This document shows, piece after piece, positions 1-61,456 of a DNA stretch of 64,000 nucleotides (positions are counted from its first letter, which is position 1; each line of letters begins with the position of its first letter). The position numbers were made by a program, and so were the translations under genes. This stretch comes from Mytilus trossulus. Lineage: Eukaryota. The notes under the pieces were generated by a model that saw only the letters and a program-made list of their open reading frames with translations, was not told where the DNA came from and ran no database searches. Location of the stretch: assembly GCF_036588685.1 (NCBI RefSeq), contig NC_086379.1, positions 10,292,001 to 10,356,000 on the forward strand. The letters run 5' to 3'.

Positions 1-356
1 AATTTAGTTATACGTGTTGTAGGTGGATTGTTGTCTGAAAGTGATATCATACCCTTTATCCCTTTGATTTGATTCCCCCTGATATTCTAACCCTAATAGC
101 AATAGTGTGCATTCTTTCTTTACGAAATTATATACACTTGAAACACAACATATTTTTTTTTTCCATTTTGGAAATCATCGTGTCCTTACTTCAGATAAAA
201 ATAGAAAGATGTGTGCTTATGTGACCAGTCCCTACCAGGACATAAAAGGTTAACAACTATATGTCACCGTACATGCCTTCAAAATTCAACCGCAAAGGAA
301 GCAATGAGGGCCTCGAAATGAAAAAAAAATAAATAATTCAAACAATATACTTAATA

Positions 357-945
357 AAAGTAAAATCATTCAAAAAATGCTGAACTCCGAGGAACGGAAA
401 GTCCCTAATTAAATGTCAAAATCAAAAGCTCAAACACATCAGACGGATGGATAACAATTATCATATTCCTGACTTGGTACATGTATTTTCTTATGCAGAA
501 AGTGGTAGATTAAACCTGGTTGTATAGCTAGCTTAACCTCCCATTTGTATTCAAGTCGCATAAAATGTCATCATATTGACAACGATGTGTGAACAAAACA
601 AACATGTAAAAAATTTTAAAAATATAGGTACAGCAGTCAACATTGTGTTAAAATCTCAATCATTATAAAAACAAACAAATATGTAACAAAGAAGCACAAT
701 AAGTCAAATAGACAAAGCACATTAGCCAAAATGCAAGACAAGACTATTTATATCTATCATAGCAAAAAAAAACAATAAGGGGATGTGTAAGTACATATCA
801 TCGTCATATGTAACAAAGAAGCATAAAAGGCATATAAATAAAGCACAACTATAGCAGCAATGAAAGACAAGAATACACAAATTTTGCCATTAAATAATAA
901 CACAATGAAAAGATCTATAAGTGCAGTGTTAACAACCGTCACAAA
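357..945 (-). mobile_element. Dispersed repeat family A, copy 1 (contains a degenerate twister-P5 motif at ~460-550)
   Basis: Clear similarity to 17884-18300, 31561-31708, 38780-39026, 42521-42688 and 48630-48915. Strand is that of the ribozyme-sense reading; boundaries approximate. Confidence 0.8.
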
Positions 946-1589
946 TATGCATGCACATTTAAAAACAATCGTTCACCATCAGCTGAGAAATTGAAAGAAT
1001 TGACAGCATTGCATCATTCAAGGTTTAGACTCTGTTTTAAACTATAGGAGTATCATATCTCAAAAATCCAATGCTTCTAGATTTGATGACTTTGAAAAAG
1101 TTTCCGGTTTGAAAAGTTGGTGATTTTTAATCTATTTGAATTATCAAATACCGAAAAATCAGTTTTTTGCTTATCTGATTTGGATGTCCTATTAGACTGT
1201 ATCTGCTGAATAATGTTTTTGATTCAGAAGTTTTTAATTTATTAGGCTACGGAATATTATTTATACACGAGCAGTTATCTAGAACAACGCTACAAACTCT
1301 ATTATGTTGTTCTGCGCTTTCATAGTTGGTTGTAATACATCTTTCATTGGCTATGGGGGTTTGATTGCATATATGTAACTGTCACACGATTCATAAGCTA
1401 CAACATGAAATAACGGACCAGTTCTTTCCGTCTATAGAATCTTCATAATTCCTTTTTTTAATATTTAGATTTGCTAGGATATATTAAGTGTTTAATCTTG
1501 GAGTGAATCTACGTTTCTTTTGTTGTTTAGTATATCAATATCAAGTCAGTTCTATCTCCCATATGATATAAAATTGGTATCATGCGAGT

Positions 1590-2160
1590 TTGTAGAACAA
1601 ACATTTTACATAGCGTCCGGCCTTGTTAGCGCTATCACGTGTACAATTCTTGTGAGGTTTTTGTAAAATATATATCATAGATTTATTTTAGCAATAATTT
1701 GAATGAGTTTCAAATAATTTTTTTTTAAAAGAGTTATTTCCCATCGAATATCGTTACCGCTCTCATGTGTACAATGACAGATATATATGAAACTTATATC
1801 GCAGGTTTGTATTAGCAAGGTCTCGAACGAGTGTTTTTTAAGAGTTTTTCCCTTGTAAATATTGATTATATAAAAACATTGGATGTTTATCTCTCATGTG
1901 TACAATTCTTGCCAAATATTCATGAAAGTTATATCATAGATTTATATCAGCAATGTGTATGACATTTTCAAAATTAATTACCAATCAAATAATTGATTTA
2001 CGAGTTATGCCCTTGGAAATATTAATTATCTCAAAAATTTAATTGCACATGTTCTCAACACTTCATTTCTCTAAGATAATCATATAGTTATGAGGACAAA
2101 CAAGTTTGTTTAGTCATTTCCCCTGGACAGATAAAATATCCCTAACGCGGGGCATATTCG
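1590..2160. repeat. Degenerate modular repeat with ~130-bp internal subrepeats (bivalve pearl/HINE-like)
   Basis: Three diverged units containing (c)tctcatgtgtacaat...gagttat..ccc, ending in gcggggcatattc. Family assignment is inference. Confidence 0.35.
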
Positions 2161-2868
2161 AACTTTGTTCTTTATAAAAAAAAAATAATATACGGTATAT
2201 TTTTTTTATCCTCTCAATTTTTAATTTTTTTTGTATTCATTGTCGGTCGCAGATATTAATTTAACTGTCATGTTAAGCACAATTTGTTTTCTTTCTTGTG
2301 TTACCTGTGAGTGTATTTCTTATGTATTTGTGTAATTATCTTCCAAACGTATGCATACATATTCCCTTGTTAGTAATACCGCGAGTATTACTGGAGTTCA
2401 CGGTTTGTATGTACTCCCGAAAGGACAATACTAATATCCTGTTTTCGGCAGGCAACCATTAAGACTAAATAAAAAAAACTAGATATGAAATCCCAAATAA
2501 CACGTGATGATTCATGACGGTTAACTTTCAGGGTTAACATATCAACAACGGTACAGGCTGTCGTGTAGTCCAAGAATATCGAACAATGAAAAATGTTCGT
2601 TGTCATGACAGACAAATATAAAAATCAAGAACTTGCGTTATTGTACCGTATATGATTAAAATATTAAATTTTGCATGTAACACGTTTTCTATTTGGTGTT
2701 TTTTTTGTCTATAAGCTCATCCACATATTTTTTTTATGTGACTGTGACGTCATCAACGGGTTTTGATATAGTAGTCCTAAAAAATAGAATTTAGAACCAA
2801 ACTATACGGAATGGTTGTATTTATATTACATACCGTCTTTACGAAATACATAAAAAAAATACAGTATA

Positions 2869-3270
2869 AAATTCAGAAAGGAAATGGGGAATGTATCAAA
2901 TCGACAATAACCGGACCATAGATCACACAACAGACGGAGGGCAACCTATGGGTCTTCAATGTAGTTATAAACTCCCAAACCCGTAGGCGTCCTTCAACTG
3001 TCCCATTAACAAATATGTATACTAGTACAGTGATAATGAACGTCATACTTAACTCCGAATTATAGACAACAAACAAAATAAAAAATCATACAAGACTTAC
3101 AAAGGCCAGAGGCTCCTGACTTAGGACAGGGACAATATTGCGGAGGGGTTAAACATGTTTATGAGATCTCAACCCTCCCCTATACCTCTAGCCAAAGTAG
3201 AAAAGTAATTACAAAACAATACGCACATTAAACTTCAGTTCGAGAGAAGTCCGAGGATGTAACAAAAGAA
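2869..3270 (-). mobile_element. Dispersed repeat family B, copy 1 (degenerate twister at 3104-3193)
   Basis: Homologous to 8874-9200, 43736-44070 and 60643-61456. Confidence 0.85.
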
Positions 3271-4435
3271 AGGTGCACATTTCAAAAACCACTCGCGTAG
3301 CACGTTTTTCAGTTTGCACCAAATTCTTCAAAGACAGAAAGAATATGTTACAGTCATTCCTTAATTAGTTATGACGTTTACACGCATATAGCAAACAATT
3401 TCAATTGACCTAATTTTGATGCAATATAGTATTGAATACACGCATACGTACACAATTACATGCTCTTGTATTGCAAATATAAAAGAACAATTAGTAAACA
3501 GCAATTTAATTTCCGTCTTACACCGACGAACAAAAGCAGATCATCCCACATATTATCCAATTAAGATACATAACTAAATGTTCATAGTATTTTCGCCTTG
3601 TTAATAGACATCAGGTTAAACCTTTCTATCCTCATGGCGTCTTCAATGAATCCCCTTATAATTATTTTTTTAAAGTATGCTTAGTTTATGTTGTGCGTCT
3701 TTTTGATGCTTTATCCTCCGAAACAATTAACAGATATTTGTACCTAACAGAAGACTAACGTTCATCTAAATGGACACATTAAATTAATTGATCAGCTGCC
3801 GTTATAGTATACTGCATTGTAACATTTATAATTTAATAGATTTAGAATGGTGAAGAAATAACATATTTCAATCAATAATTGTCGTAAATTAACAAAGAAT
3901 GATTAAATTTGACTTAATGTGATGTGATTCTGGAAAAGTGTGCTTTTTTAAATCTCTCGTTTTGTATGTTTGGCAAAAGCATATAAAACATTGAACATAT
4001 ATCGAAAAAAAAAACCATTACATTTTTTTCAATAAAATTATTAGACGGTGCAATAAAAACAAAACCCCAATTACAAAGCAGACAAACTAAAGGTATAAAC
4101 GATTATCTTATGCCAGTTTTTGATTTATTTAAATACATGAAGCTTGTTTCGTAGTAATATTGATACTGAGGTACTGAAGAAAAATTGCAATGATTGATGT
4201 AAACAAAACAGTGAATTATTACGTGTGTAAACTTGATTATATAACAATTTCTTTTTGAGCGGTGACTCGAATGAACAAAAATAAAGTGATAACAATTTAA
4301 CCTATAAATATATTTCTGGTTAAAATATGATAATCAAGTCTTTACCTCATTTTAAGATGTTTTCGGTATAAAAGCAGTGACTTGAACGATAACTAACAAA
4401 AGAAACTAATTTGCAAGACGTAAAAACTCTTGTGA

Positions 4436-5265
4436 ATAGATATAGGAAGATGTGGTGTGAGTGCCAATGAGACAACTCTCCATCCAAATAACAATTTAAA
4501 AATTAAACCATTATAGGTTAAAGTACGGCCTTCAACACGGAGCCTTGGCTCACACCGAACAACAAGCTATAAAGGGCCCCAAAATTACTAGTGTAAAACC
4601 ATTCAAACGGGAAAACCAACGGTCTAATCTATATAAACAAAACGAGAAACGAGACACACGTATATATTACATAAACAAACGACAACTACTGTACATCAGA
4701 TTCCTGACTTAGGACAGGTGCAAACATTTGCAGCGGGATTAAACGTTTTAATGGGCCCAAACCTTCTCCCTTTTTCTGAAACAATAGCATAACATCACAA
4801 CATATAAAAACATACGATAAAATATCAATTAGCAGACTTAACTCAATCAAAAAACGTATGATTACACAAAGAACGAATAAATTTTATCTGCGATATCTGA
4901 ATACAAATGCACAGTTAATTAAATATTAGAGACAAACAGTCATGACCAAAAGGCTATCAAATAAATTCAAACACACTGAGAAATATTTAACCAATCAATG
5001 TTCACTTTAGAAAAAACCCGTTTTTTTATAATCTTGAAGTTTATACAAATGTTGTAAGAATAAGTGAAAAATTGAAGATATTACAAATAATCAAAGCTGG
5101 TATACAGCCAAGATCCATACAAATAAAAAATGACAAAAAAGCATTATAAACAGTATCAACAGGTCGAATTAACAAGAAAATACGATTTGAGAGTACTCGC
5201 AGTTACTGACAGCTAGTTAAAAGCCAAAACCAATTAATAGTAAAAAATCATGCATCAGAGACTAA
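4436..5265 (-). mobile_element. Dispersed repeat family C, long copy
   Basis: 4436-4800 is almost identical to the reverse complement of 39104-39464; also matches 62279-62463. Right boundary approximate. Confidence 0.85.
4696..4779 (-). ncRNA. Twister ribozyme, type-P5 permutation (family C, intact core)
   Basis: Minus strand reads TCAGA AAAA GGGA GA AGG TTTGGGCCCATTAAAACGTT T^AA TCCC GC T GCAAATGTTTGC A CCTG T CCT AA GT CAGG AA TCTGA. Pairings: P5 TCAGA/TCTGA, P2 TCCC/GGGA, T1 CCT/AGG, T2 GC/GT, P3, P4 CCTG/CAGG. Predicted cut between 4741 and 4740. Confidence 0.85.
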
Positions 5266-5913: not shown

Positions 5914-6618
5914 ATGAACAACAGTTTCACAAATGAAACTTACATTTCTGAACAAAAGATTTCTCATTTTTTACAAACTATATTCATATTCCTGTATTCT
6001 ATAATCGTAGTAATAGCTATAGGGGGGAATAGTATTGTTTGTTATCTAGTGTATGCGTACAAACGGATGAGAACTATTCCAAATTATTTTCTTGTTAATT
6101 TAGCCATAAGTGATATAATCATGGCGATTTTCTGTATTCCGTTCACATTTGTGGCCAATCTTTTATTAAACTATTGGCCATTCGGTGAAACCATGTGCCC
6201 TTTAGTGAGTTATTTACAAGTGGTAGCAGTGTTTCTGAGCGCATATACATTGGTTGCAATGAGTTTTGACCGCTATATCGTCATTGTTCACCCATTCAGA
6301 CCACGAATTACTACAAGAAAAACCCTTTGTGTTATTATTATCATCTGGATATTATCTTTATCTATACCCATTCCAACATTAATCAAATCAAAAGTGCAAT
6401 ATTATTCAAACACAAGTGGCCAATGTTTAGAAACATGGGATAACAATCACACTTTAATGTATGCATACAGTACAGGAATAATGGTATTACATTTTTTCGG
6501 ACCATTAGTTGTGTTGATATTCTGCTATAGTAGAATAGGATATAACATTTGGAACAAAACTCTTCATGGAAATGATGAAAATAAAAGACGATTACAGTTA
6601 GCGTCAGCAAAACAAAAG
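5914..6618 (+). CDS. Coding exon (235 codons, N-terminus to TM5/ICL3) of a class A neuropeptide GPCR, RYamide/luqin receptor-like
   Basis: N-glycosylation sequons NNS/NET, TM1 AIGGNSIVCY, TM2 NLAISD, YWPFG..MC, DRY, TM4 W, TM5 FFGPL..LIFCY and basic ICL3 end ASAKQK. AAG|GTGCGT donor at 6618/6619 in phase 0; the ORF track's last 8 residues are intronic read-through. Confidence 0.92.
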
Positions 6619-8873
6619 GTGCGTATATGTATTTTATCATATTAATTGACTATTTAAGGTCATGGGCATAGGTATCAATATTTCTTTTCTTTATATGAAA
6701 AAAATCATGCAAATGTTTTGTCCGTAAACATTATGATGTGATATCATATGTTTTCCGAAAGGTGTCTGTTCGTGATAAGAATTAATTAGTAGTGCCATTA
6801 GGCATCTTCAAGTGAGAGATGACCAAAGTCGTCCTGACACATAACAGAGATAATTGGACGAAAACAGACTTTTGATATTGATTAAACTAATAGTTATATA
6901 AGAATCAATGATTTGAAATATCATACGTTTTTAGAGTTGTCTAAGACCATTCCCGACATAAATTCAGACAGAAATTTTTTATAGAAAGCTAACCTTTAAT
7001 TTGGAAATAATTAATTTAACGATAATGTTGTCGTTTTTAGGACGATTGGATTTTGAACATGAATTCTTAAAAAGGGATTTTATTAACATTCATATTCAAA
7101 TCAAGGTCACTTTTCGAGAATATTGTAAACAACTCTTGGCCTTTAAACTATAATTGAAAATCGAAAAATAATGCATTTATCTCGTTTATCATTTGAAATA
7201 TAAATGATTAAATTCTTTCAAAATAGGTGCATTACTAATTCGAATTTCAATTATCAACCGGTGCCAAAGTTGTATGCACTATTTAAGTAAAATCTGGGAC
7301 ATAGCCCATTTGATGTAAATTTAACGTAGGTAAATCTCAGTCTTCGTACATGGAAAAACCTTCAGCAACAAGAATAAAAGTAGATGCTGAATATATTTCA
7401 ACGTAAAAGTAACCCTACAACAACAAAAAAAGAAGAGAGCAACATACATTTTGCGACTCAACAACAAAAAACTCATTCCGTGCAGCGGTTATTTTTTTCA
7501 GTTAATTTCGGGATTGATCGTTATTGATTTCGAATTCACATTATCAAAACTCTAATCAAACTTCAGGAAAACTTCAGGAAAAGCGCTAAATGTCAACGAA
7601 AATATGTTTTCCGTAACAATAATTTCAGATTCAACCTTTTCAGATATTTATTCATGTATGAACTAAAACTCTAGTCTTACAACTGCTTAACAAGGAAGTA
7701 AAAAGACAAACGAAATTCAGAAAAAGGTTTATAATGTGTAACATTATTTGAATATTGATTAATGTGATACGTTTTCTGGCCCATTTTTTATTCTGTGGAA
7801 TGAAATTAAAGGGTTTTTACATTCGAACAAGTGTCGTTCTTTTTCGTAAACGAAGGAAAATTATAACTAATTTTTGTACATATCCCAACAGCATAAGGAT
7901 GAAAGTATCATTTTAGTTGGTGCACGTAATCTGCTTTGATTTTTATAACAAAAACACGAATATCTGAATGCATTATAAAACTTAAAGTTAAAACTATGTT
8001 AATTGTTATGCAATAGGATATATAAGCACCACCATTACCCAAATAGTTATTTCTGTATATAAACACCGCCAAATTTAAAACAAATATGTGATATTCAACG
8101 GTTATCCTCAGTTACAGCCCAAAAAGGAAATGTTATTAATTTTGTCACCTCCAAGATATCAGCGCTATGCTTAACTTGTCTGATAACTATACGGTTCAGT
8201 ATAGTCCTTTTTTTGTTACTCACTACATCAGATATTTCAAAAAGCTGGTCTGTTTTTGGAACTAAGGTGTCAAATAATGTTTTCTTCGATCTGTATGAAT
8301 TTCAGTACAAAATGAAACTCATCTTCAATGATTCCTCGAACTACATATATATTACATGTATGCGACTATCTCCTCTTTTTTTTTATTGGAAAACTTTTTA
8401 ACACCCAGATTCAATAGAAAGTTTAAACTAACTATAGTGTCATTAATCGAATAAAAGTCAGAATGTTTTTATACATTAAAACATAGAAGGTTTTTGAAGT
8501 AGCCATTTTCATTCTCAATTTTATCATCTTTCAGGAAATCGTTGAATGTGAAAATTAAGGATGTATGACTATTCTGTTACAGTTAAATTTACAAAGTTGT
8601 TAAACATGGTCTGAAGGAATAACTTTATTATCACGATACAATCAAATGGAACTGACAAAGTAATTTGGCTAAAAACCATTCTATAGAAAAAGGACGAAAT
8701 AGTATTTAACCATTGAACAGTTTCAACATACTTTTATATATAATGCATGATGAAAAACAGAATTGTATTTCGCTGTCTAGACAAAAGTTTCGACCAGTAG
8801 ATTAAACCTCGCAACTTAACATACATAGCTAATAGATACTACATGTACACATTTATTCATGTATGGTATTGAT

Positions 8874-9200
8874 TACATTGGTTAGAGGTATAGTGGGAGG
8901 GTTGAGATCTCACAAACATGTTTAACCCCGCCGCATTTTTGCGCCTGTCCCAAGTCAGGAGCCTCTGGCCTTTGTTAGTCTTGTATTATTTTAATTTTAG
9001 TTTCTTGTGTACAATTTGAAAATTAGTATTGCGTTCATTATCACTGAACTAGTATATATTTGTTTAGGGGCCAGCTGAAGGACGCCTCCGGGTGCGGAAA
9101 TTTCTCGCTTCATTGAAGACCTGTTGGTGACCTTCTGCTGTTGTTTTTTTATTTGGTCGGGTTGTTGTCTCTTTGACACATTCCCCATTTCCATTCTCAA
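8874..9200 (+). mobile_element. Dispersed repeat family B, copy 2
   Basis: Near-identical to the reverse complement of 43736-44070. Confidence 0.9.
8880..8970 (+). ncRNA. Twister ribozyme, type-P5 permutation (family B, near intact)
   Basis: P5 GGTTAGAGGT(8880-89)/GCCTCTGGCC(8961-70); P2 CCCC(8926-29)/GTGG(8893-96), one mismatch; catalytic GA 8897-98; T1 GGG(8899-8901)/CCC(8949-51); T2 GC/GT; P3 CGCA-TTTT-TGCG; P4 CCTG/CAGG; predicted cut T8923^A8924. Confidence 0.85.
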
Positions 9201-9716
9201 TATTATTACCTGATGTTGCCCTATTTATGAACAAGACTAGTATAACCATTTTTTCTAACTTTGAAATGAACCATTTCTTATTACAGAACCGAGTTATGCA
9301 ATTTTCATATTTTGACAACTTCAAAAATATATTTAAGGATAAACGTCGTTTTGTCAATTGAGTATATGACCAGTATGGATGTAATCACCATACTCATACA
9401 CAAAAAGAGTCTTGAATTTCCGATTTTATATAATTAAAACCTTTTGATTTTCAGTATCCCTTTTATGTCATTTTAATCCACATTAATTTGCTGAAAAGTG
9501 AAAATCTGTAATCTTTAACACGCAATCTTCAGTGTCACGAATTATTTATACCTTCGGAAGCTGACTACGCAAACTCACGATATCATACATTCTCTAATAT
9601 AAAAATTTACAAGGTGAAATTGAAGATAACAATGCATTGATTGATTACTGAAAATCAATCATTGAAATTAAAAGTATATTGAACAAATAATTGTACTGCT
9701 TAGTTGTAAGTCTTAA

Positions 9717-11879
9717 TGCCCGCGTCACACTGTCCCGATTTTTACGCCGATGGCAACAAGATTATGGAAATTATGGAATTTTTTTAAATCGGGACTGATT
9801 GTATCCAGATCGGGCTATTCGTAGTGCCATCTTTAACCATCGTAGAACCATCGGTTTTCTTACCTTCGGGGACAATTTCGGGCAGGGTTCTAAATTTTTT
9901 ATAACGGATCAACGAACCCATTACCTTTAACATGTTAAAAAATCACCGAAGGTGTGTCCGATGTTGAGGGTTCGTATTGAGTTCGTATCACCATCCTCAC
10001 CATCGTGATGTCACCGGGAATGCATCTTTGAACATCGTATTGCATTCGTGTTTCCATCGTTGCCATCGGGCAGTTTTGACATTTCGATGTCTACACAAAT
10101 GAATCACGAAGCTACCCGAAGGTCTTACGATGGCAACACGACTTCATGAAGACCTCGTAATCCCGACGTGTTGCCATCGAATAAAAGTACGAAGACGACA
10201 AGATGGAAATACGACGGCAATAAATCCAGCTAAATGTAAGTTATATTTCGCGCTAAAATACATTTAAAGTATTTAAAGTGCCATGCGCGATATGCACTGG
10301 TCAGTCCAATACGACAGTTGAGAAAAACGTTCACAAAACATGGAGCACATATCATATGTTCTATGAGAACAACAAAGGCGACAGCATTGTTTCTATTAAT
10401 TAAAATTGAACAAGAAGAGCAGCTATTACGGGCTCAGGATTTACTTTTACAAGTCAAATATTATTTTTTTGTCAATTTTTCATATCAAGTAACATTATGA
10501 AAATCATAAACGCGCCTCGTACACCAACACTGCAGGTACACGTATATAGGGAGACCAACTTTTTCTTCATTATTCTGATTGTTTATGTATCGTCTGAGTT
10601 GTTGTTACACGAATGGTTACTCTATAACCATTTTGTTTTCTATATGTCATATTTTGCCGCATTTGTTGCTTTCCCAACATCCTTCCTTTTTTCTATATAA
10701 TTATGATATTCTCCTGGAAAGAGCTCTTTTTGAATAAAACGGATCAACGAACCCATTACCTTACCTTTAAGATAGATCAGTAAACATGGGCATAATCATG
10801 GGTGATTACTCAGACTAGTGCACACATTTTACAGTTCAAACAAGTTCAAAAAATCGTATGTAACATATTGGGGACAAATATGGACACTATATTTGTATAT
10901 GACAAATGCAGAAAATGGTAAATTGAATATGCATATTTGATACATGAACTATTTTTTTTAGAAATCCACCAAAACATTCAGTAACTGGAAATACCTTAAA
11001 TATTGTCTTTAGAACCAGCAGGGAAAAAAAGAGCAACCAATTTCCTGTGTATTATGCTATTTCAAGGAAAAAAACAAGTCCATCTGCATGACCTTGACCT
11101 TTGGCCTTGAATGTAAAAAATGGCAGATCATTACAAGGAAGAAAAATATACCAAATGTGGTTAACATCTCTTTAAGCATATTAGTTTTAGAGTGTCCACA
11201 AGGGTGATATTGCCTTGTAATACAACTGCCACTGTGACCTTGACCTTTGAACTTTAAAGTTAATAGCGCTTAAGATATTCTTAACGAATAATACACACCA
11301 AGTTTTAAGCATTTTGGTTCTAGAGTGTCCATTTCAATTTTATCTACACGCAACTTTCATATAGTAGGCGAGGGGATAATAAACTAAGTTTTATAAGAAT
11401 TAGACAAAAGATCGATTTCCCGCCATGCAAGGCAGACTTGTACAGATCCTATATGTTATAGAAATTCTGTTCGTATCATAAAAAAGTTCAAAACAGGTAA
11501 AACGCATTTTTAGATCGTTTGTATACTTGTATTATGTACATACATGTATTTAACCATTATTTATCATCGTATGGCCATCGCGCCATCATCGTAATCCATC
11601 GTGTAGGCTTCGTTTTTCCATCGTGTAGCCTTCGTAATCCATCGTGTAGGCTTCGGCTGAGATAGAAGCTTAAATACCCGTCTTCGGTTAACCTTCGTAT
11701 GTCCATCTTTTGCTATCGTATATAATTTCGGCACCATCGTATAGACTTCGTTTTTCATCGTACTTGCTTCGGTCACTTTTTGGTATATGAACGAGGTCGG
11801 GACCAACTTCGTACGAACTTACAATTTTCGCATTCGGGTGTCCATCGTATATAGAAATCGGGACAGTGTGACGCGGTCA
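9717..11879. mobile_element. Non-autonomous PIF/Harbinger-type DNA transposon, copy 1
   Basis: 25-bp TIRs TGCCCGCGTCACACTGTCCCGATTT (1 mismatch), TAA target duplication (9714-16/11880-82), subterminal CCATCGT repeats; second copy at 23377-25556. Confidence 0.9.
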
Positions 11880-12602
11880 TAAAGGTATTCGTATGATAGA
11901 AAATAGAAATGTTTTTCAATAATGTCACAATACTTAGAATCGTACTATGTTCGTGAAAAATTTATGCTTATTGTTAAAGGTCGTTCGTGGACATAAAATA
12001 GTTGATTTCTTTCTACACGTCATTTGGTCTCTGGTGGAAAGTTGTCTAGTTGGAGCCATACCATATCTTTTTTTTATGATGAAAGCTCAGTACGTATATT
12101 GAATTATCCGTTTATAAACGTGCACGCATTTATTGTTTCTCTGTTCATGCATCAACCAAGATGAAAAAAACAATAAATAATTAAATTGAGAAACAAACCC
12201 TTGACGATCAGTATTATCAGAGATGGAACAACTGTGTTTCATTTTTATGTTCTTTTTCGAGAAATACCTGATGCAGCATACATAAAGATGAAAAATCGCG
12301 TTACAGTTAATCTGCTCAGTTATTGCTCCCTACTAAATATGTTCATGATATAGAACTGATCGACATTTTAATGACTTCTCCAGGTCACCTCTTTATCGCT
12401 AACGAATTTTATTTTAGGTGCACTGAGCAGTAGGATAAATCAAGCTGTCTTCTGTATTTCAACCGCGATTTAATTTTACACATACAACAACTAGATTTGG
12501 ACACCGAGAATAAAAGTTAGATTTACTTGAAAAGTATTCGAGTAAACATTACCTGCATTACTACAGTGCTTGATTCTTAAGAAACACAAATATAGTAATT
12601 AA

Positions 12603-14508
12603 AATGGTATACGTAAACATTTCGAAGAAACACCAATCTAACACTTAATGGTATAAGTAAACATTACGAAGAAAAACCAATCTAACACTTAATGGTGTCA
12701 GTAAACATTACGAAGAAACACCAATCTAACACTTAATGGTATAAGTAAACATTACGAAGAAACACCAATAAACACTTAATGGTATAAGTAAACATTACGA
12801 AGAAACACCAATCTAACACTTAATGGTATAAGTAAACATTACGAAGAAACACCAATCTAACACTTAATGGTGTCAGTAAACATTACGAAGAAACACCAAT
12901 CTAACACTTAATGGTATAAGTAAACATTACGAAGAAACACCAATCTAACACTTAATGGTGTCAGTAAACATTACGAAGAAACACCAATCTAACACTTAAT
13001 GGTATAAGTAAACATTACGAAGAAACACCAATAAACACTTAATGGTGTCAGTAAACATTACGAAGAAACACCAATCTAACACTTAATGGTATAAGTAAAC
13101 ATTACGAAGAAACACCAATAAACACTTAATGGTATAAGTAAACATTACGAAGAAACACCAATCTAACACTTAATGGTATAAGTAAACATTACGAAGAAAC
13201 ACCAATCTAACACTTAATGGTGTCAGTAAACATTACGAAGAAACACCAATCTAACACTTAATGGTATAAGTAAACATTACGAAGAAACACCAATCTAACA
13301 CTTAATGGTGTCAGTAAACATTACGAAGAAACACCAATCTAACACTTAATGGTATAAGTAAACATTACGAAGAAACACCAATCTAACACTTAATGGTGTC
13401 AGTAAACATTACGAAGAAACACCAATCTAACACTTAATGGTATAAGTAAACATTACGAAGAAACACCAATCTAACACTTAATGGTATAAGTAAACATTAC
13501 GAAGAAACACCAATCTAACACTTAATGGTATAAGTAAACATTACGAAGAAACACCAATATAACACTTAATGGTATAAGTAAACATTACGAAGAAACACCA
13601 ATCTAACACTTAATGGTATAAGTAAACATTACGAAGAAACACCAATATAAAACTTAATGGTATAAGTAAACATTACGAAGAAACACCAATCTAACACTTA
13701 ATGGTATAAGTAAATATTACGAAGAAACACCAATCTAACACTTAATGGTATAAGTAAACATTACGAAGAAACACCAATCTAACACTTAATGGTATAAGTA
13801 AACATTTCGAAGAAACACCAATCTAACACTTAATGGTATAAGTAAACATTACGAAGAAACACCAATCTAACACTTAGTGGTATACGTAAACATTACGAAG
13901 AAACACCAATCTAACACTTAATGGTATAAGTAAACATTACGAAGAAACACCAATCTAACACTTAATGGTATAAGTAAACATTACGAAGAAACACCAATCT
14001 AACACTTAGTGGTATACGTAAACATTACGAAGAAACACCAATCTAACACTTAATGGTATAAGTAAACATTTCGAAGAAACACCAATCTAACACTTAATGG
14101 TATAAGTAAACATTTCGAAGAAACACCAATCTAACACTTAATGGTATAAGTAAACATTACGAAGAAACACCAATCTAACACTTAATGGTATAAGTAAACA
14201 TTTCGAAGAAACACCAATCTAACACTTAATGGTATAAGTAAACATTTCGAAGAAACACCAATCTAACACTTAATGGTATAAGTAAACATTACGAAGAAAC
14301 ACCAATCTAACACTTAATGGTATAAGTAAACATTTCGAAGAAACACCAATCTAACACTTAATGGTATAAGTAAACATTACGAAGAAAAACCAATCTAACA
14401 CTTAATGGTATAAGTAAACATTACGGAGAAACACCAATCTAACACTTAGTGGTATAAGTAAACATTACGAAGAAACGCCAATCTAACACCTAATGGTATA
14501 AGTAAACA
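12603..14508. repeat. Minisatellite, ~43 copies of a 44-bp unit
   Basis: Unit AATGGTATAAGTAAACATTACGAAGAAACACCAATCTAACACTT repeated head-to-tail with no unique spacers. Confidence 0.97.
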
Positions 14509-14752
14509 AAACAAATTGTGGATCGATTGATAAACATTTCAGTAAAACAGATGTATCTAAGTAGCTTCAGAAGGTACAAACTATTAGGTAGAATTTTGAA
14601 CGTAACATGTATATGTGTTTGACGCTTTCAAAAAACATTGAATTGTTTAAAATTTTTCTCACTTTTCTAAATGATCTGATATTTTGTAGCATTCACGGGT
14701 CTATGAACGTTTACACTTCCATTTATCGCATATGTATTTTTGAAACAGTGTG

Positions 14753-15896
14753 CACAAGTATTCCACATTCCAAACTAAAAGACAAATTAAAAGAGTTGGT
14801 ATTACTTTGCTTCATAAAAAAGGATGGCCGACGTAGATACAAGTATCTTGTCTTGTCTTTACACTTTGTAAAGAATCATTCTGATTCAAACAAATAATTC
14901 TCTGAAACCGATATTATCAAGATGCTTGATTTCTTGATTGACAACATATTTGTTACGTTCGGAGGACGTGTTTTTCAACAGACTGTCGGCATCCCAATGG
15001 GAACAAACTGTGCCCCTCTACTTGCTGACTTGTTTCTTTATTATTATGAGGCTGACTTCATGCAGGAACTTCTTAGGAAGAAAGATAAGAAGTTAGCAAT
15101 ATCCTTTAACTCTACTTTCCGCTATATAGATGACGTTCTTTCACTAAACAATTCAAAATTTGGTGACTATGTGATCGCATCTATCCCACCGAATTGGAGA
15201 TAAAGGATACTACAGATACAGTTAAGTCGGCTTCATATCTTGACTTACATCTAGAAATTGACAATGAGGGTCGGTTGAAGACAAAACTTTACGACAAAAG
15301 AGATGATTTCAGCTTTCCAATTGTGAACTTTCCATTTTTAAGTAGCAACATTCCTGCAGCACCTGCATACGGGGTATATATCTCCCAATTGATACGATAT
15401 TCCCGTGCTTGCATTTCCTATCATGATTTTCTTGATAGAGGGTTACTGCTCACAAGGAAGCTATTAAACCAAGAGTTCCAAATGGTGAAGTTGAAATCAT
15501 CCCTTCGTAAATTTTACGGACGCCATCACGAGTTGGTTGACCGTTATGGAATAACCGTTTCACAAATGATATCGGATATGTTCCTTACGTCGTAACTATA
15601 ATCCCCTTCCCTTTCATGAATTTGACCTACCGAATTATACTATTTACCGGATTTGTAATCACATAAGCAACACGACGGGTGCCGCATGTGGAGCAGGATC
15701 TGCTTACCCTTCCGGAGCACCTGAGATCACCCCTAGTTTTTGGTGGGGTTCGTGTTGTTTATTCTTTAGTTTTCTATGTTGTGTCATGTGCACTATTGTT
15801 TTTCTGTTTGTCTTTTTCATTTTTAGCCATGGCGTTGTCAGTTTGTTTTAGATTTACGAGTTTGACTGTCCCTTTGGTATCTTTCGTCCCTCTTTT
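14753..15896 (+). mobile_element. 5'-truncated Penelope-like retroelement (Naiad-type RT C-terminal half plus 3' UTR 'family D'), pseudogenised
   Basis: RT motifs TSIPH, GIPMGTNCAPLLADLFL, RYIDDV, YLDL, KLYDKRDDF..PIVNFP and YISQLIRYSRAC, split over three ORFs by a stop and a frameshift. Stop at 15595 with no C-terminal GIY-YIG, consistent with the N-terminal-endonuclease Naiad clade (inference). Confidence 0.85.
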
Positions 15897-17883: not shown

Positions 17884-18300
17884 AAAGTAAAAACACAAAA
17901 ATACTGAACTCCGAGGACAATTCTAAAAGGAAAGTCCAAAATCAAAAGGCAAAATCAAAAGTCCAAACACATCAAACGAATGGATAACCACTGTCATATT
18001 CCTAACTTGGTACAGGCATATTCTAATGTAGAAAATTGTGGATTGAACCTGGTTTTATAGATAGCTAAACCTCTCACTTGTATGACAGTCGCATCAAATT
18101 TCATTTTATGGTTAACTATGCGTGAACAAAACAAACATACTCAAAGAGAAAAAATGTCAAAAATAGGGGTACATCAGTCAACACTGTGTTATCATCTTAA
18201 CCACTATAAAAACAACAAATGAAACGAAGAAGCACAAAAAGGCATACATCAAATTTAACATCCTCATTTTGCATATCTTATACGATTTTGTTTATCTATG
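17884..18300 (-). mobile_element. Dispersed repeat family A, copy 2
   Basis: Homologous to 357-700 and the other A copies. Confidence 0.85.
17990..18089 (-). ncRNA. Twister-P5 motif (family A)
   Basis: Minus strand reads ACTGTCATA CAA GTGA GA GGT ...CCAGGTT C^AA TCC AC A ATTTTCT ACATT AGAATAT G CCTG T ACC AA GT TAGG AA TATGACAGT. P5 is a perfect 9-bp stem; T1 ACC/GGT; T2 AC/GT; P2 is short or imperfect. Confidence 0.7.
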
Positions 18301-23376: not shown

Positions 23377-25556
23377 TGCCCGCGTCACACTGTTCCGATT
23401 TTTACGCCGATAGCAAGACGATTATGGAAATTTTCAAAATCGGGACTGATCGTATCCAGATCGGGCTATTCGTAGTGCCATCTTTAACCATCGTAAACCA
23501 TCGGCCACTTTTTCTAGCCTTCGGGGACAACTTTGGGAAGGGTTCGAAACTTTTTAACATGTTAAAAAATCCTCGAAGGTGCGTCCGATGTTGAGGGTTC
23601 GTATTGAGTTCGTATCACCATCCTCACCATCGTAATTTCACTGGGAATGCATCTTTGAACATCGTATTGCATTCGTGTTTCCATCGTTTCCATCGGGCAG
23701 TTTTGACATTACGATGTCTACACGAATAAATCACGAAGCTATCCGAAGGTCTTACAATGGCAACACGACTTTGTGAAGACCTCGCAATCCCGTCGTGTTG
23801 CCATCGAATAAAAGTACGAAGGCGCAAGATGGAACTACGACGGCATTAAATCCAGCTAAATGTAAGTTTATTTTCGGGCTAAAATACATTTAAAGTGCCA
23901 TGCGCGATATGCACTGGTCAAATACGACAGTAAAAAAAGACGTTCACAAAATATGGAGCTCATATCGTATGATTCTAGGAGAACAAGAAAAGCGACAGCA
24001 TTGTTTCTATTAATTCAAATGGAACAAGAAGAGCAGCTATTACAGGCTCAGGATTTACTTTTACAAGTAAAATTTTATTTTTTGTCAATTTTTCATGTCA
24101 AGTAACATAATGAAAATCATAAACGCGCCTCTTACAACAACACTGCAGGTTCACGTATATAGGGTAACCAACTTTTTCTTCATTATTCTGATTTTTTATT
24201 TATCGTCTGAGTTGTTGTCACACGAATGTTTACTCCATAGCCATTTTGTTTTCAATATTTCATATTTTGCCTCATTTGTTGCTTTCCCCACATCCTTCCT
24301 TATGTCTATATTATTATGATATTTTCCTGGAAAGGGCTCTTTTTGAATAAAAGGGATCAACGAACCCATTACCTTACCTTTAAGATAGATCAATAAACAT
24401 GGGCATTATTATGGGTGATTATTCAGACTAGTGCATACATTTTACAGTTCAAACAAGGCAATGCCGAGCGTGGCACCTCCTCGTATGTAACATATTGAGG
24501 ACAAATAAGGACACTATATTTGTATATGACACATGCAGAAAATGGTAAATTGAATATGCATATTTGATACAAAAACTATTATTTTTAGAAATCAACAAAA
24601 ACATTCAGTAACTGGAAATACCTGTCTTTAGAACCAGCAGGTTAAGAAATGAGCAACCAATTTCCTCCTGTGTATCATGCTATTTCAAAGAGAAAAAAAC
24701 AAGTCCATCTGCATGACCTTGACCTTTGGCCTTGAACGTAAAAAATGTCAGATCATTACAAGGAGGAACAATATACCAAATGTAGTTAAAATCTTTTGAA
24801 GCATATTTGTTTTAGAGTGTCCACAAGGGTGATATTGCCTTGTATTACAACTGCCACTGTGACCTTGACCTTTGAATTTTAAAGTCAATAGCGCTTAAGA
24901 TATTCATAACGAGTAACACCATACCAAGTTTTGAACATTTTGGTTCTAGAGTGTCCATAATAATTTTATCTACACGCAACTAACATGTAGTAGGCGAGGG
25001 GATAATAAACTAAGTTTTATAAAAATAAGACAAAAAGATCGATTTCCCGCCATGCATGGCAGACTTGTACAGAAACGATATGTTGTCAAAATTCTGTTTG
25101 TATCATAAAAAAGTTCAAAACAGGTAGAACGCATTTTTAGATCGTTTGTTTACTTGTATTATGTCCATACATGTACTTTACCGTTGTTTATCTTGTTTAA
25201 AACGTGTGATGCCTTCGGAATATAATTAAATGCATCGTTAGCTGTACACGATGTCAAAAGACATCGTATGTCCACCGCGCCATCATCGTAATCCATCGTG
25301 TAGCCTTCGTGATCCATCGTGTAGGCTTCGACTGAGTTGTGAAGCTGAAATACCCGTCTTCGGTTAACCTTCGTATATCCATCTTTTGTCATCGTATATA
25401 ATATTGGCACCATCGTATAGACCTCATTATTTATCGTACTTGCTTCGGTCACTTTTTGGTATTTTAACGAGATCGGGACCAATTTCGTACGATCTTACAA
25501 TTTTCGCATTCCGTTGTTCATCGTATATAAAAAATCGGGACAGTGTGACGCGGGCA
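23377..25556. mobile_element. Non-autonomous PIF/Harbinger-type DNA transposon, copy 2
   Basis: Same TIRs as 9717-11879, TTA target duplication (23374-76/25557-59), colinear with copy 1 and in the same orientation. Confidence 0.9.
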
Positions 25557-25739: not shown

Positions 25740-26145
25740 TGTGTGTTCTTGTTTCGAGCTGTTACATCACTGGCCAAGGTTAGAGGAGGGTTTGAGCCTT
25801 AACACCAGTTTAACCATTGCAACTTTTTGTATGTGCTTGTCCCAAATCAAGATCATGTGATTCAGACTGAGTGATTGTCGTTTGCTGATTTCATTCATAT
25901 TGGGTTTCACAGAGGAACATGACTGTCATTGTTCTGTAGATAAGTCAGGCCATTTGTTTCTCGTTTGAGTTGTATTGTATTTGTTATTTCGCTGCCTTTT
26001 ATAGCTGAATATGCAATATGAGTCTTGCTCATTGTTAAAGGTCAATAAGGAGGAACTATCATATAGTGTTAACGTCTATGTCATTTTGGTCTCTGGTGAA
26101 GAGTTGGCTCATTGACAATTATACAACATCTTCTTATTTTTATAT
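25740..26145 (+). mobile_element. Decayed repeat family E (related to C at its 3' end) with a degenerate twister motif at ~25770-25855
   Basis: GA GGG ... T^AA ... G CTTG T CCC AA AT CAAG A; 3' end gagttggctcattgacaattatacaacatcttctt resembles the family C end; a similar 3' fragment lies at 11960-12075. Confidence 0.6.
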
Positions 26146-31560: not shown

Positions 31561-31708
31561 ACAAAAATACTGAACTCCAAAGAAACTCAAATCGGATAGT
31601 CCTTAATCACATGGTAAAATCAAAACTCAAACACATCAAAGGAAAGGAAAATAACTGCCACATTCATGTTTGGTAAGGCAGCTACTTGTGAGAAAATGGT
31701 TAAACCAG
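31561..31708 (-). mobile_element. Family A fragment (degenerate)
   Basis: aaaatactgaactcc...caaacacatcaaa...gaaaatggttaaacc matches the family A 3' part. Confidence 0.65.
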
Positions 31709-38779: not shown

Positions 38780-39026
38780 AACATATGTCACGCAACATTG
38801 TCAATATAATGGCATTTGATGCGACTGTCATACAAGTGAGAGGTTGAACTAGCTATAAAACCAAGTTCAGTCCACCAATTTCTACATAAGAAAATGCATG
38901 TACCAGGAATATTTCAGTTGTAATCAAAGTGTTTGATGTGTTTGAGCTTTTGATTTTGCCATTTGATTAAGGACTTTCCGTTTATAATTTTTTTCGGAGT
39001 TTAGTATTGTTGAGATTTTACTTTTT
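38780..39026 (+). mobile_element. Family A copy; twister motif at 38824-38919 disabled by a 5-nt deletion (AAGTC)
   Basis: Reverse complement of the A2 sequence; reads gtacc-aggaat instead of gtaccaagtcaggaat. Confidence 0.8.
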
Positions 39027-39103
39027 GTATATTTAAGAGTCTATTTACATTGTAGTTATGATTTATTTTAAGAGGTCAGTTGAGAAACAAACAAAGTATA
39101 TGT

Positions 39104-39464
39104 TGTGATGTTATGCTATTGTTTCAGAAAAAGGGAGAAGGTTTTGGCCCATTAAAACGTTTAATCCCGCTGCAAATGTTTGCACCTGTCCTAAGTCAGG
39201 AATCTGATGTACAGTAGTTGTCGTTTGTTTATGTCATATATACGTGTTTCTCGTTTCTCGTTTTGTTTATATAGATTAGACCGTTGGTTTTCCCGTTTGA
39301 ATGGTTTTACACTAGTAATTTTGGGGCCCTTTATAGCTTGTTGTTCGGTGTGAGCCAAGGCTCCGTGTTGAAGGCCGTACTTTAACCTATAATGGTTTAA
39401 TTTTTAAATTGTTATTTGGATGGAGAGTTGTCTCATTGGCACTCACACCACATCTTCCTATATC
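39104..39464 (+). mobile_element. Dispersed repeat family C, young copy
   Basis: Almost identical to the reverse complement of 4436-4800. Confidence 0.9.
39124..39207 (+). ncRNA. Twister ribozyme, type-P5 permutation (family C, intact core)
   Basis: P5 TCAGA(39124-28)/TCTGA(39203-07); P2 GGGA(39133-36)/TCCC(39165-68); GA 39137-38; T1 AGG(39139-41)/CCT(39190-92); T2 GC/GT; P3 TGCAA-ATGT-TTGCA; P4 CCTG/CAGG; predicted cut T39162^A39163. Confidence 0.87.
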
Positions 39465-42520: not shown

Positions 42521-42688
42521 AAAAAGTAAATAAAAAAAAAAACTGAACTCCAAGGAAAATTCAAACACGGAAAGTCCATAACCAATTGGCAAAATCAAAT
42601 GAAAAAACACATGAAACGAATGGACAGCAACTGTCATATTCCTGACTTTGTACAGGCATTTTTCAAATGTAGAAAATGGTGGATTGAA
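42521..42688 (-). mobile_element. Family A fragment whose 5' end lies at the predicted twister cleavage site
   Basis: Homology to A2 stops at ggattgaa (42688); predicted cut between 42686 and 42685. Confidence 0.8.
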
Positions 42689-43735
42689 TAGATGAATAGT
42701 TCAAATATGTTATTTTTTGTCCTGCAATAGTAGAATGATGAAATAAGGTCTGATATTTTGCTTTGTAAACACTTCGTTTTACAATCAAAAATTTCACTCA
42801 GAGTAATTGCGATGGCTGAACAAATCAACGTTGTATATGGCTTTGTCTGGTTTTCTCTTAATGATAAAGATAGATAGTGTACTATAACATTAACTCTTAG
42901 GCATATCACGCAAGGTCTGGGATATTGTAGTGCGAGTTTGTAAAGTTAAAAAAAAGCAAATATTCATCTTGGCAATACTTTTTAGCAAAGGTCGAGAGAA
43001 ATCAGTTAAATTATTAGTTTTGAAATGTGTCATTCGTCAATTTAAAGATCAAATTAGCTGCATTGAAAGTTATAACCATGCTTATAATTATACGAAAATT
43101 AATTAAAAGCAAATGTCAGTTGTCAAATTACATATTTCCTCGGAAATTAACAGTTTTTATATTTGTTCATAATGATACTTTGAAACGAAATATTGCATGC
43201 AGAATTAAGCGCCATAATCGAACATTCGATGAAAGAGCTTCAATGGCATTATAAATCCGCCATCAAAACGTCTAGTCACATCAATGGAATTAAAGACATT
43301 GATTCGAAACTGACACCGCACGATATGACATCTAGTAATTGTTTTGTTGACATTTTATTTCAAGCGTTTATTTGATCTTATTGGTAATTAGATCATCTGC
43401 ACGTTTTGACGTACATTTCCAAGAAATGATAAGTTCATTTATTTTCATTATGGGCTGTGTGCGTATCTTATCATCAACACAAGTAAGTCGTTACGTATTA
43501 CAACTTTATTTTTTATGAAGCTTTTGAGAACGAAGTCAACATCGTTTGAGTGATCTATGCAAATCTAGTACCAACATTAAATATTTTACAAATTTCACAA
43601 TAGCTTTGAACCGATATGTTGCCGTAGTAAAAACCAAGGAAAATCAGAAAATTTCAAACAAACAGTTCAGTTCGAAACGCTTTTTTAAACAGTATTTGGA
43701 GTGCTATGCGAAAATGTATATGGAAACCCATACAT

Positions 43736-44070
43736 AAAATTGAGAATGGAAATGGGGAATGTGTCAAAGAGACAACAACCCGACCAAATAAAAAACAGCA
43801 GCAGAAGGTCACCAACAGGTCTTCAATGTAGCGAGAAATTCCCGCATCCGGAGGCGTCTTTCAGCTGGCCCCTAAACAAATATATACTAGTTGAGTGATA
43901 ATGAACGCCATACTAATTTACAAATTGTACACAAGAAACTAAAATTAAAATAATACAAGACGAACAAAGGCCAGAGGCTCCTGACTTGGGACAGGCGCAA
44001 AAATGCGGCGGGGTTAAACATGTTTGTGAGATCTCAACCCTTCCCCTATACCTCTAACCACTGTAGAAAA
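43736..44070 (-). mobile_element. Family B copy 3; twister at 43969-44059 with catalytic G->A substitution
   Basis: Near-identical to B2, but the minus strand reads GGGG AA GGG instead of GGGG GA GGG. Confidence 0.88.
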
Positions 44071-47799: not shown

Positions 47800-48627
47800 A
47801 AGACAAATTTTACTTCTAGACAATTTTAAATCTCGGTCTTTTACTGAAATAATTTCTATCAAAACTTTTGATTTTTCAACCCTGTATACCACCCTTACCC
47901 ATGTGAAATTGAAAAATTGCCCAAAAAAATAATCGACAATGTAAAATATAAAAATGGTAGCATACGCTATAAATTTCTTACTTTGGGATTTCATAAGGCA
48001 TACTTCGTTAATAGTGACGAACAAAAAGTTAAAACATGCTACACAGAAGGACAAGTGGTCAGTATGCTGGAGTTTCTTATCGACAGCATATTTGTTGAGT
48101 TTGGACTATTCCAACAAATTGTCGGTTTTCTTATGGAACAAACTGTGCGCCTCTTCTTGCCGACCTCTTCTTATTTTCATATGCATCGGAGTTCCTCCAA
48201 ACACTTTTCAAAAACAAGAGAATCAAAGAAACCAGATTATTTGATTCCACTTTCAGACATATTGATGATGTTCTTTCCATAAACAACCGAATTTTTCTGA
48301 TTCGGTTCCATTAATATATCCCCCAGAACTAGAAATTAAAGAAAAACGGACACGGCCTCATCCGCCTCATTTTTAGATTTATTTCTCGAATTTGACTTAC
48401 ACAGTCATCTTAGTACCAGAATATATGACAAACGAGACGATTTCAATTTTGAAATTATAAATTTCCCCCACCTTAGTAGCAATATACATGTACCAACTTC
48501 ACCTGCATATGAGATATTGATTCCCAACTTATTCGATATTCAAGAGCTTGCAGCTCCTACTCAGACTTTGTAAAACGTCATCAGTGTTTGAGTAGAAAGT
48601 TGATAAACCAGGGGTATGACAAAGAAT
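47800..48627 (+). pseudogene. Decayed Penelope-like (Naiad-type) RT fragment, second subfamily
   Basis: FDFSTLYTTL.H, MLEFLID.IFVEFG..FQQIVG, RHIDDV, IYDKRDDFNFEIINFPHLSSNI, QLIRYSRAC and KLINQGY across several frameshifts. Confidence 0.85.
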
Positions 48628-48629
48628 GA

Positions 48630-48915
48630 TGGCTGCTGTACCCATATTTTGACTGTTTTATTTATTGTGTCTGTTTAGTTAACGCATCATTGTAAATATA
48701 ACGGAATTTGATGAGACTGTCAACAAAGTAAGACGGTTAGCGCTATAAAACCAGGTTTAATCCACCATTTTCTACATTTGAAAAGGCCTGTACCAATTCA
48801 GGAATATGACAGTTCATGTCCATTTGTTTTTGATGTGTTTTGTTATTTGATTTTGCCATGTGGACTTTCCGAATTGATTTTCCTCTAAGTTTTGTATTTT
48901 TGTGATTTAAACTTT
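48630..48915 (+). mobile_element. Family A-type copy directly abutting the RT fragment; degenerate twister at 48716-48813
   Basis: ACTGTCA...GA CGG TTAGCGCTA TAAAACCAGGTTT^AATCCACC...GCCTGTACCAATTCAGGAATATGACAGT. Confidence 0.8.
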
Positions 48916-60642: not shown

Positions 60643-61456
60643 AAATTTGAGAATGGAAATGGGGAATGTGTCAAAGAGACAACAACCCGACATTAGAAAA
60701 AAAACAACAGCAAAAGGTCACCAGCAGGTCTTCAATGTAGCGCGAAATTCCCGCACCCGAAGGCGTCCTTCAGCTGGCCCCTAAACAAATATATACTAGT
60801 TCAGTGATAATGAACGCCACACTAATTTCCAAGTTGTACACACGAAACTAAAATTAAAATAATACGCAATAAACAAAGGCCAGATGCTCCTGATTTGGGA
60901 CAGGCACAAAACTACGGCGGGGTTAAACAGGTTTATGAGATCTCAATCCTCCCCCTATACCTCTAGCCAGTGTAGAAAAATAAACGCATAACAATACGCA
61001 AATTAAAAATGCAGTTCAAGAGAAGTCCGAGTTCGATGTCAGAAGATGTAACCAAAAACAAATTAAACAAAATGACAATAATACATAAATAACAACTGAC
61101 TACTAGCAGTTAACTGACATGCCAGCTCCAGACTTCAATTAAACTGATTGAAATATTATGATTTTATCATATGAATATCAGGCACAATCCTTCCCGTTAC
61201 CGGTTTAGTATCATACCATCGTAACATATATGAGAAGATCATAACCCGTGTCACGCCAACAACTGGTTATTAAATAAGTGTATTTAGTTCCGATGCAAAG
61301 AACCTATAAGTGAATCAATATTAACGCCAACATATGTAATCTTTAATGACCTGACAACAGTATCGTATCTATATCCCTTCTTAATAAGTCTATTTAAAGG
61401 TTTTGTTAGTTTCTGAGTTGAATACTGACATGTTTGTGTTGTATAAAGAATATTTC
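60643..61456 (-). mobile_element. Family B long copy: end of a coding frame (61454-61284), 3' UTR and degenerate twister (60878-60968)
   Basis: 60643-61050 is homologous to B1-B3; the upstream part has a 56-codon open frame ending ...LIGSLHRN*. Confidence 0.8.

Follow-up and report, generated by a model that had tools for sequence, protein, structure and literature searches.

A twister-like RNA fold conserved in the 3' tails of Naiad-type Penelope-like elements of Mytilus trossulus

What are the high-copy repeats that punctuate this stretch of the Mytilus trossulus genome, and why do families of them that differ over most of their length appear to share the core of one small ribozyme? An earlier note on the 64,000 nucleotides analysed here (the window, whose positions are used throughout unless another locus is named) had read the core of a type-P5 twister ribozyme in three such families, A, B and C, with a family B copy as its focal example. 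We give a probability of roughly 0.7 to the following answer: the tails of dead, 5'-truncated Naiad-type elements carry a sense module of about 90–120 nt with the architecture of a type-P5 twister, which would be expected to cut itself.

The repeats as tails of 5'-truncated retroelements

Copies 95–100% identical to the family B module were recovered from the mussel's own 1.3-Gb genome. They share a single sharp 3' end, equivalent to window position 9207 and common to the element that hosts the focal module and about 30 other copies, while their 5' ends scatter up to more than 1.4 kb upstream. Families A and C likewise have a common 3' end and variable 5' ends, and the module lies in sense in all three. 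A sharp, shared 3' end together with variable 5' ends is the pattern left by 5'-truncating retroelements; all three families are therefore the 3' tails of 5'-truncated retroelements, and the copies in the window are dead (Table 1). A SINE or a non-autonomous retrozyme was considered as the source and ruled out, because the 5' ends vary and longer copies enter a reverse transcriptase gene.

This gene is represented by a 480-aa open frame with reverse transcriptase motifs, about 320 nt upstream of the B module. A tblastn search with this frame placed relatives directly before a family A module (Table 1) and before the B copy at 60878; the latter belongs to an element copy at 60642-61454(-) that extends to a C-terminal fragment of the reverse transcriptase at 61287-61454(-). 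The module thus has a constant position, following the reverse transcriptase gene in sense. The 480-aa frame, which lies downstream of the last TGA, is retained in more than 100 genomic copies. At six places, pairs or triplets about 4.02 kb apart form head-to-tail tandems, and at locus L034 a near-complete unit with a module of its own comes after a tail that also carries one.

Translation of L034:3500-4990(+) yielded GIY-YIG, CxC and DKA motifs, all upstream of the reverse transcriptase. By motif reading only, the GIY-YIG region (L034, about 3580-3875) runs ..IIYLLT(TGA)NKPGCGIQYVGETERYL..EH; the CxC motif is SCNCS, followed by PADKAANNIIIV(TGA)RKFY; the DKA motif reads PADKA, and this TGA lies 8 aa beyond DKA. 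In-frame TGA codons stand at the expected cysteines, namely before GIY-YIG, a second time after it, and 8 aa past DKA. In clam Naiad selenoproteins, UGA is found at the cysteine preceding GIY-YIG and at the cysteine eight residues after DKA (PMC8557442); since both the TGA positions and the domain order fit that description, family B is, as read from its motifs, a selenoprotein-type Naiad Penelope-like element. The region L031:2100-2360(-) belongs to the same body of evidence. Pfam and NCBIfam assigned no significant family to the reverse transcriptase frame or to the GIY-YIG pieces, the latter being split by TGA, and the Naiad assignment rests on the motifs and the match to PMC8557442.

The B copy at L031 has, between its stop codon and its module (L031:321-415), a SECIS_1 match at L031:610-674(-) (32.3 bits against a threshold of 35, E 2e-4), which lies about 55 nt past the former and about 195 nt upstream of the latter. 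Rfam found no hammerhead in the B tail.

The window and locus L031 also contain features of other kinds. A 44-bp unit is repeated in tandem at 12464-14600, in at least about 42 copies that are up to 99% identical centrally and decay toward the 5' side, and a segmental duplication of about 2 kb (9926-11857 and 23553-25533; several blocks, 90–94% identical) lies in direct orientation with a spacing of about 13.6 kb. Unrelated non-LTR retroelements have left remains at 40205-41479(+), where an ORF has a zf-RVT domain, and at L031:3949-5937(-), where a 662-aa RVT_1 ORF adjoins the B copy. A 243-aa ORF at 5914-6645(+) contains a rhodopsin-family 7TM receptor domain (7tm_1, E 7e-47) and is probably one exon of a host GPCR gene.

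Table 1. Twister-fold modules, their parts and their host elements in the window. Scores are those of covariance models R1 and R2, described in the text.
Feature	Position	Strand	Score and remarks
Focal family B twister-fold module	8880..8970	+	113.3 bits (R1)
Focal module, P5	8880-8889 / 8961-8970	+	
Focal module, P2', GA and T1'	8893-8896 (GTGG); 8897-8898; 8899-8901	+	
Focal module, palindromes 1 and 2	8903-8912; 8915-8922	+	
Focal module, predicted cut	T8923^A8924	+	
Focal module, P2, T2 and P3	8926-8929; 8930-8931; 8932-8943	+	
Focal module, P4 and its loop	8944-8947 / 8956-8959; loop 8948-8955	+	loop TCCCAAGT
Family B element copy hosting the focal module	8874..9207	+	5'-truncated 3' tail of a Naiad-type Penelope-like element
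Family B module	43969..44059	-	115.2 bits (R1); perfect P2 (GGGG/CCCC), AA replacing GA
Family B element around the preceding module	43734-44065		
Family B module	60878..60968	-	104.6 bits (R1)
Family B module, older	3104..3193	-	104.5 bits (R1); 1-nt deletion in P2'
Degenerate B-like module	25770..25862	+	28.7 bits (R1), 39.7 bits (R2)
Family C module	39124..39207	+	93.5 bits (R1); element copy 39097-39466; P5 TCAGA/TCTGA, P2 GGGA/TCCC, T1 AGG/CCT, T2 GC/GT; predicted cut T39162^A39163
Family C module	4696..4779	-	93.2 bits (R1); element copy 4438-4806
Family A module	48716..48813	+	45.4 bits (R2); about 100 nt downstream of the following fragment
Reverse transcriptase fragment directly upstream of the preceding module	47855..48617	+	about 31% identity to the family B protein (tblastn)
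Family A module	17990..18089	-	43.8 bits (R2); P5 ACTGTCATA/TATGACAGT, T1 GGT/ACC, T2 AC/GT
Family A module, diverged	457..558	-	32.1 bits (R2)
Family A module, 5' half lost or replaced	42630..42728	-	24.3 bits (R2)
Family A module, dead	38824..38918	+	15.9 bits, E 0.27 (R2); P4-loop deletion

Covariation and distribution of the fold

The module runs from 5' to 3' through P5, a short A-rich junction, P2', GA, T1', a linker, Y^AA (the caret marking the predicted cut), P2, T2, P3, P4, A and P5', and the 8-nt P4 loop, U-NCC-AA-GN, supplies both T1 and T2'. The earlier note had described this order at 8880-8970; on re-reading the sequence all of its helix positions agreed, and the positions that it gave in family C, G39137 and T39162^A39163, are correct as well.

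We built one covariance model, R1, from the window's six B and C copies only, with the pseudoknots left out; a second, R2, scores family A copies at 24–45 bits. R1 recovered the window's B and C copies at 93–115 bits and the A copies weakly. Twelve of the 13 copies that had been listed before were recovered by these models, those at 25770, 38824 and 42630 being degenerate or partial, while the remaining one (31655-31705) was found by neither R1 nor R2.

For covariation we aligned 35 distinct sequences and added T1 and T2 to the structure afterwards; as neither pseudoknot was part of the aligning model, their support is not an effect of fitting. Paired cells amounted to 92.3%, against 70.7% in shuffled alignments, none of 500 of which reached the observed value, and fell to 35–47% when partners were slid by 1–3 columns. 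Both sides change in 19 of the 21 pairs, both pseudoknots included, and the covariation score was 0.573, compared with 0.20 after shuffling and about 0.08 with slid partners.

The individual helices behave alike. P2 is paired in 85.9% of cells and all four of its pairs vary on both sides, the pair adjoining AA occurring as GC (15), UA (10), AU (6) and CG (1); P4 is paired in 99.3% of cells, with three of four pairs covarying. T1, in which the strand following P2'-GA forms 3 bp with the P4 loop, is paired in 91.8% of cells and covaries in two of three pairs; T2, where the P4 loop forms 2 bp with the strand following P2, is paired in 89.9%, and both of its pairs covary (AU 10, CG 10, GU 10). Across families, P2 is spelled GGGG/CCCC, GGGA/TCCC, GGGT/ACCC, GTGT/ACAC or GAGC/GCCC; T1 GGG/CCC, AGG/CCT, AGA/TCT, GGT/ACC or GGT/GCC; T2 GC/GU, AC/GU or CC/GG; and P4 CCTG/CAGG, GCTG/CAGC, ACCG/CGGT, ACTG/CAGT or GCCG/CGGC. 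P5 and P3 are rewritten in every family with their pairing kept, and minimum-energy folds recover P5, P3 and P4.

Of 22 family representatives, 20–22 have Y^AA, GA and the loop U-NCC-AA-GN. These letters, with GA standing before T1' and with the A after P4, are also the fixed letters of the Rfam twister consensus, whose UAA, GC, U-CCC-AA-GC loop and GA-GGG lines they match; the same fixed letters appear in a published description of twister (PMC5408937). The module is kept among families whose reverse transcriptases are only 31–50% identical. A twister-like fold with both pseudoknots, which compensating changes preserve across many families and also outside this species, is thus strongly supported. 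The covariation of P5, P2, P3, P4, T1 and T2 that the earlier note had seen between three families extends to many more, and its conserved A after the cut, GA before T1' and P4 loop are borne out across the family representatives.

The module is not confined to the mussel. Among 80 marine-metagenome contigs chosen for encoding relatives of the reverse transcriptase (32–98% identity), R1 and R2 match 27, at reverse transcriptase identities from 98% down to 34%. Every match, the 28 significant ones of R1 among them, lies on the strand of the reverse transcriptase, downstream of the gene; R2 adds L100, L119 and L138, the last with a reverse transcriptase only 34% identical. For three metagenome families there was no DNA match in the mussel genome, where the mussel's own families give 127–3533 first-look candidates in the same search, which indicates that the three come from other organisms. 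Together with the spread of reverse transcriptase identities, they argue against the idea that the metagenome matches represent one recent family. In about a dozen distant relatives with enough flank, no module was found.

Within the mussel, the module occurs 12 times in the 64-kb window and five times in 50 kb of arbitrarily chosen genome, upholding the massive amplification claimed before. These densities suggest a total of about 100,000 copies by order of magnitude, nearly all of them dead tails.

A fourth Penelope-like reverse transcriptase fragment, family D, lies at 14739-15571(+) and is 42–47% identical to that of family B. Its GC-rich 3' untranslated region, 15666-15759(+), matched neither R1, R2 nor Rfam; family D has either no ribozyme or a different structured RNA.

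Departures from twister and the case for cutting

Rfam gave a different picture from the comparative evidence. At gathering thresholds the window had no Rfam match, and a permissive search of the whole window returned no twister. When the stretch 8860-8990 was compared with 4227 Rfam families only Twister-P5 responded, at 15.9 bits against a threshold of 37.6; a family C copy reached 14.4 bits with twister-P1, whose threshold is 67.2. RF02684 (Twister-P5), run over the whole genome, had no match above threshold. The Rfam twister models, which the earlier note had proposed as a check, therefore do not call the copies twisters, and the case for the fold rests on the comparative evidence.

The P1 helix that should flank the cut is absent, as the strand after T1' (TT plus a palindrome) is not complementary to the strand before the cut (..GTT). 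The earlier note's interpretation is partly supported, in its fold and in the amplification. In 21 of 22 families the position of P1 is taken by a perfect palindrome of 6–10 nt, one or two bases after T1', with at least 14 spellings among families. Covariation extends to all five of its pairs, even the central, adjacent one (AU 10, CG 6, GC 5, UA 3); adjacent bases cannot pair inside a hairpin, so this constraint points to a duplex of two copies or to a feature at the level of DNA. The predicted dimer energy of the linker is -13.5 kcal/mol, against -7.2 kcal/mol for shuffled linkers, and replacement of P1 by a palindrome suggests that the module may dimerise. A second palindrome, AAC..GTT, is mostly invariant, and its last base is the one before the cut. 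It is complementary both to itself and to T1'-TT; neither dimer pairing nor pairing with T1'-TT is supported, its outer pairs being invariant.

P2 departs from the consensus too. Its second pair is unpaired in 15 of 32 rows; the focal B subfamily and group F have U.C or A.C there. The focal copy has GTGG rather than GGGG as P2', giving a U.C mismatch, while P2' is GGGG in most other B copies sampled without selection. Group F has U.U as the third T1 pair. P2 comes in two lengths: 4 nt in B, C and several others, and 3 nt before T2 in group F and in family A with its relatives. Without this 3-nt P2, a reading picked after the sequences had been seen, family A and its relatives do not fit; the place of family A in the common core holds at the price of a shortened helix. 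In assayed natural twisters P1 is dispensable and imperfections of P1 and P2 are tolerated (PMC5408937, PMC11662667), and the departures of P1 and P2 therefore do not exclude activity.

More canonical-looking type-P1 twister sequences exist elsewhere in the genome, at L037:1483-1542(-) (55.5 bits against a threshold of 67.2), near which there is no long ORF, and at L036:1512-1596(+) (30.5 bits, same threshold), adjoining a family C fragment; both have the consensus loop UCCCAAGC.

Turning to RNA, we mapped four raw-read RNA-seq runs of the species to L031:1-2600, an intact-looking B copy. Over the gene, first-mate reads of the plus strand were in 2- to 6-fold excess, which suggests that the libraries are stranded and, if the usual convention holds, that the element is transcribed in sense. 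Over the tail, coverage was deep in both directions, and loose ends at the 3' end of the element entered many different flanks, indicating read-through from many insertions. At the predicted cut, between L031 positions 370 and 369, no excess of molecule starts or ends was listed at a threshold of one fifth of depth, and there was no bin-level dip. At that threshold the reads exclude efficient cutting of bulk sense RNA, but they are compatible with cutting that is weak or confined to dimers or tandem transcripts. The reads also show a B-related subfamily at L031 position 301 (joint 230->301); its tail has the module side in common, but from the module to the 3' end the sequence is different or 70 nt are deleted.

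How might such a module work? In active elements, arranged in head-to-tail tandems, it would cut after Y and so trim long tandem transcripts down to unit length, a role that has been suggested for the hammerhead of other Penelope-like elements. The palindrome in place of P1 differs between families yet is perfect, so a second copy is the probable pairing partner of the RNA. If cutting depends on such a duplex, as it may, the absence of cleavage in bulk read-through RNA would be in keeping with it. The full proposal, that Naiads carry a twister-class self-cleaving ribozyme whose P1 has given way to a palindrome and whose cutting requires the pairing of two copies, on separate RNAs or in tandem units of one transcript, is one that we put forward tentatively and at somewhat less than even odds.

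The strongest competitor, which we regard as unlikely, is a structured 3' untranslated RNA of Naiads, derived from or resembling twister, that does not cut and instead serves the reverse transcriptase as a recognition, dimerisation or packaging signal, much as do the 3' stem-loops common to LINE and SINE partners. An RNA of this kind would account for RNA-seq that has no cleavage signal, for a palindrome that resembles a dimer linkage site, for the missing P1 and sub-threshold Rfam scores, and for mismatches of P2 and T1 in large, successful families. It accounts poorly for the letters needed for catalysis only: in essentially all families, including those at 34% reverse transcriptase identity, the A past the cut, the loop's AA and the G in GA are conserved. 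A binding signal need not copy the twister active site plus both pseudoknots.

Far less probable is a chance resemblance, or the shared ancestry of young repeats whose structure has been under no selection. Copies within a family are indeed 90–100% identical and decay neutrally after insertion, and a loose descriptor of the motif, not specific on its own, also matched two unrelated AT-rich places in 617 kb. Against this, the module is kept at reverse transcriptase identities of 31–50%, with P5, P3 and the palindrome rewritten but still paired; the significant R1 metagenome matches all fall on one strand, downstream of the gene; and the shuffled and slid controls lie far under the observed values. 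The last suggestion, that the module is all or part of the SECIS that a selenoprotein-encoding Naiad, such as family B with its in-frame TGA, needs in its 3' untranslated region, is refuted, as the SECIS_1 match lies elsewhere (L031:610-674) and the module has no AUGA..AA..GA core.

A twister-class module in Naiad tails thus remains our preferred reading. We infer that it is catalytic, and consider this step well motivated; the single in vivo data set gives it no support.

Relation to known systems

The type-P5 twister ribozyme reportedly goes back to Roth et al. in 2014. The mussel module shares with this type (RF02684, clan CL00120) the order of elements opened at P5, P2, P4, T1 and T2, an optional P3 closed by C-G or U-A, the 8-nt loop U-NCC-AA-GN, Y^AA at the cut, GA before T1' and A after P4. 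It differs in having no P1 and in its place a palindrome of 6–10 nt followed by the conserved AAC..GTT, in ending T2' with U or G rather than C, and in a P2 that is often reduced to 2–3 bp with a mismatch; it scores 14–16 bits with Rfam, and its activity is predicted.

Other Penelope-like elements are said to carry minimal type-I hammerheads in their pseudo-LTRs that are active as dimers, work attributed to Cervera and de la Pena (2014) and Lunse et al. (2017). The likeness extends to the class of element, the repeated tail of tandem copies and a palindrome where a closing helix is expected; the ribozyme class differs, being hammerhead there and a twister fold in the mussel module. In the window itself, Hammerhead_3 gives a weak, minimal hammerhead-like match at 59816-59854(-), scoring 22.9 bits (threshold 48.5, E 2.3); it has CUGAUGAG and a core box, AAAAC, close to GAAAC, such as other Penelope-like clades carry.

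Twister variants are known at the 5' end of the Schistosoma Perere-3/RTE non-LTR retrotransposons (Liu et al. 2021, PMC8501958; de la Pena 2020, PMC7761336), where, as in the mussel, a twister-class motif with a reduced or unusual P1 lies in sense and is amplified with a retrotransposon. Those twisters are type P1-like, a target-site duplication forms part of P1, and their cutting has been demonstrated, whereas the mussel module is closed by P5, sits in the 3' tail (pseudo-LTR) of a Penelope-like element and is predicted to cut. Among the papers examined, none links twister to Penelope-like elements or to Naiad; a 2026 paper on ribozymes in retroelements cites for twisters the Perere-3/RTE case only (PMC13725137), and a large survey predicted bivalve twisters without further context (PMC11662667). 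If the full proposal is right, these tails would be the largest natural twister population known, with copies of the order of 100,000 per mussel genome. A twister fold in Naiad tails would provide a natural P1-less twister, possibly gated by dimerisation, and would also account for a large share of the "unknown" high-copy 3'-end repeats in bivalve genomes.

The elements themselves agree with the Naiad clade in their N-terminal GIY-YIG, CxC and DKA motifs, C-terminal reverse transcriptase, tandem copies, abundant bivalve 3' ends, UGA at the same cysteines and SECIS after the stop (PMC8557442). Selenoprotein Naiads were reported there from clams and spiders, to which family B would add a mussel case. 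The same work reported Naiads to be without canonical hammerheads (Craig et al. 2021, PMC8557442) and describes no ribozyme or structured RNA in the Naiad tail, whereas the mussel tails carry a twister-fold module. In many invertebrates Naiads outnumber all other Penelope-like elements. The contrast between hammerhead-bearing clades and the Naiad and Chlamys clades, regarded as ribozyme-less, had served to argue that the elements can do without the ribozyme, or even that it lives on them as a parasite (PMC8557442). That argument would fall if Naiad tails of several families and species share a conserved twister fold, and two unrelated ribozyme classes would have been recruited to the same place in one type of retroelement. 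Under the full proposal, a self-cleaving ribozyme would be a general requirement of Penelope-like elements, met by hammerhead in some and by twister in others.
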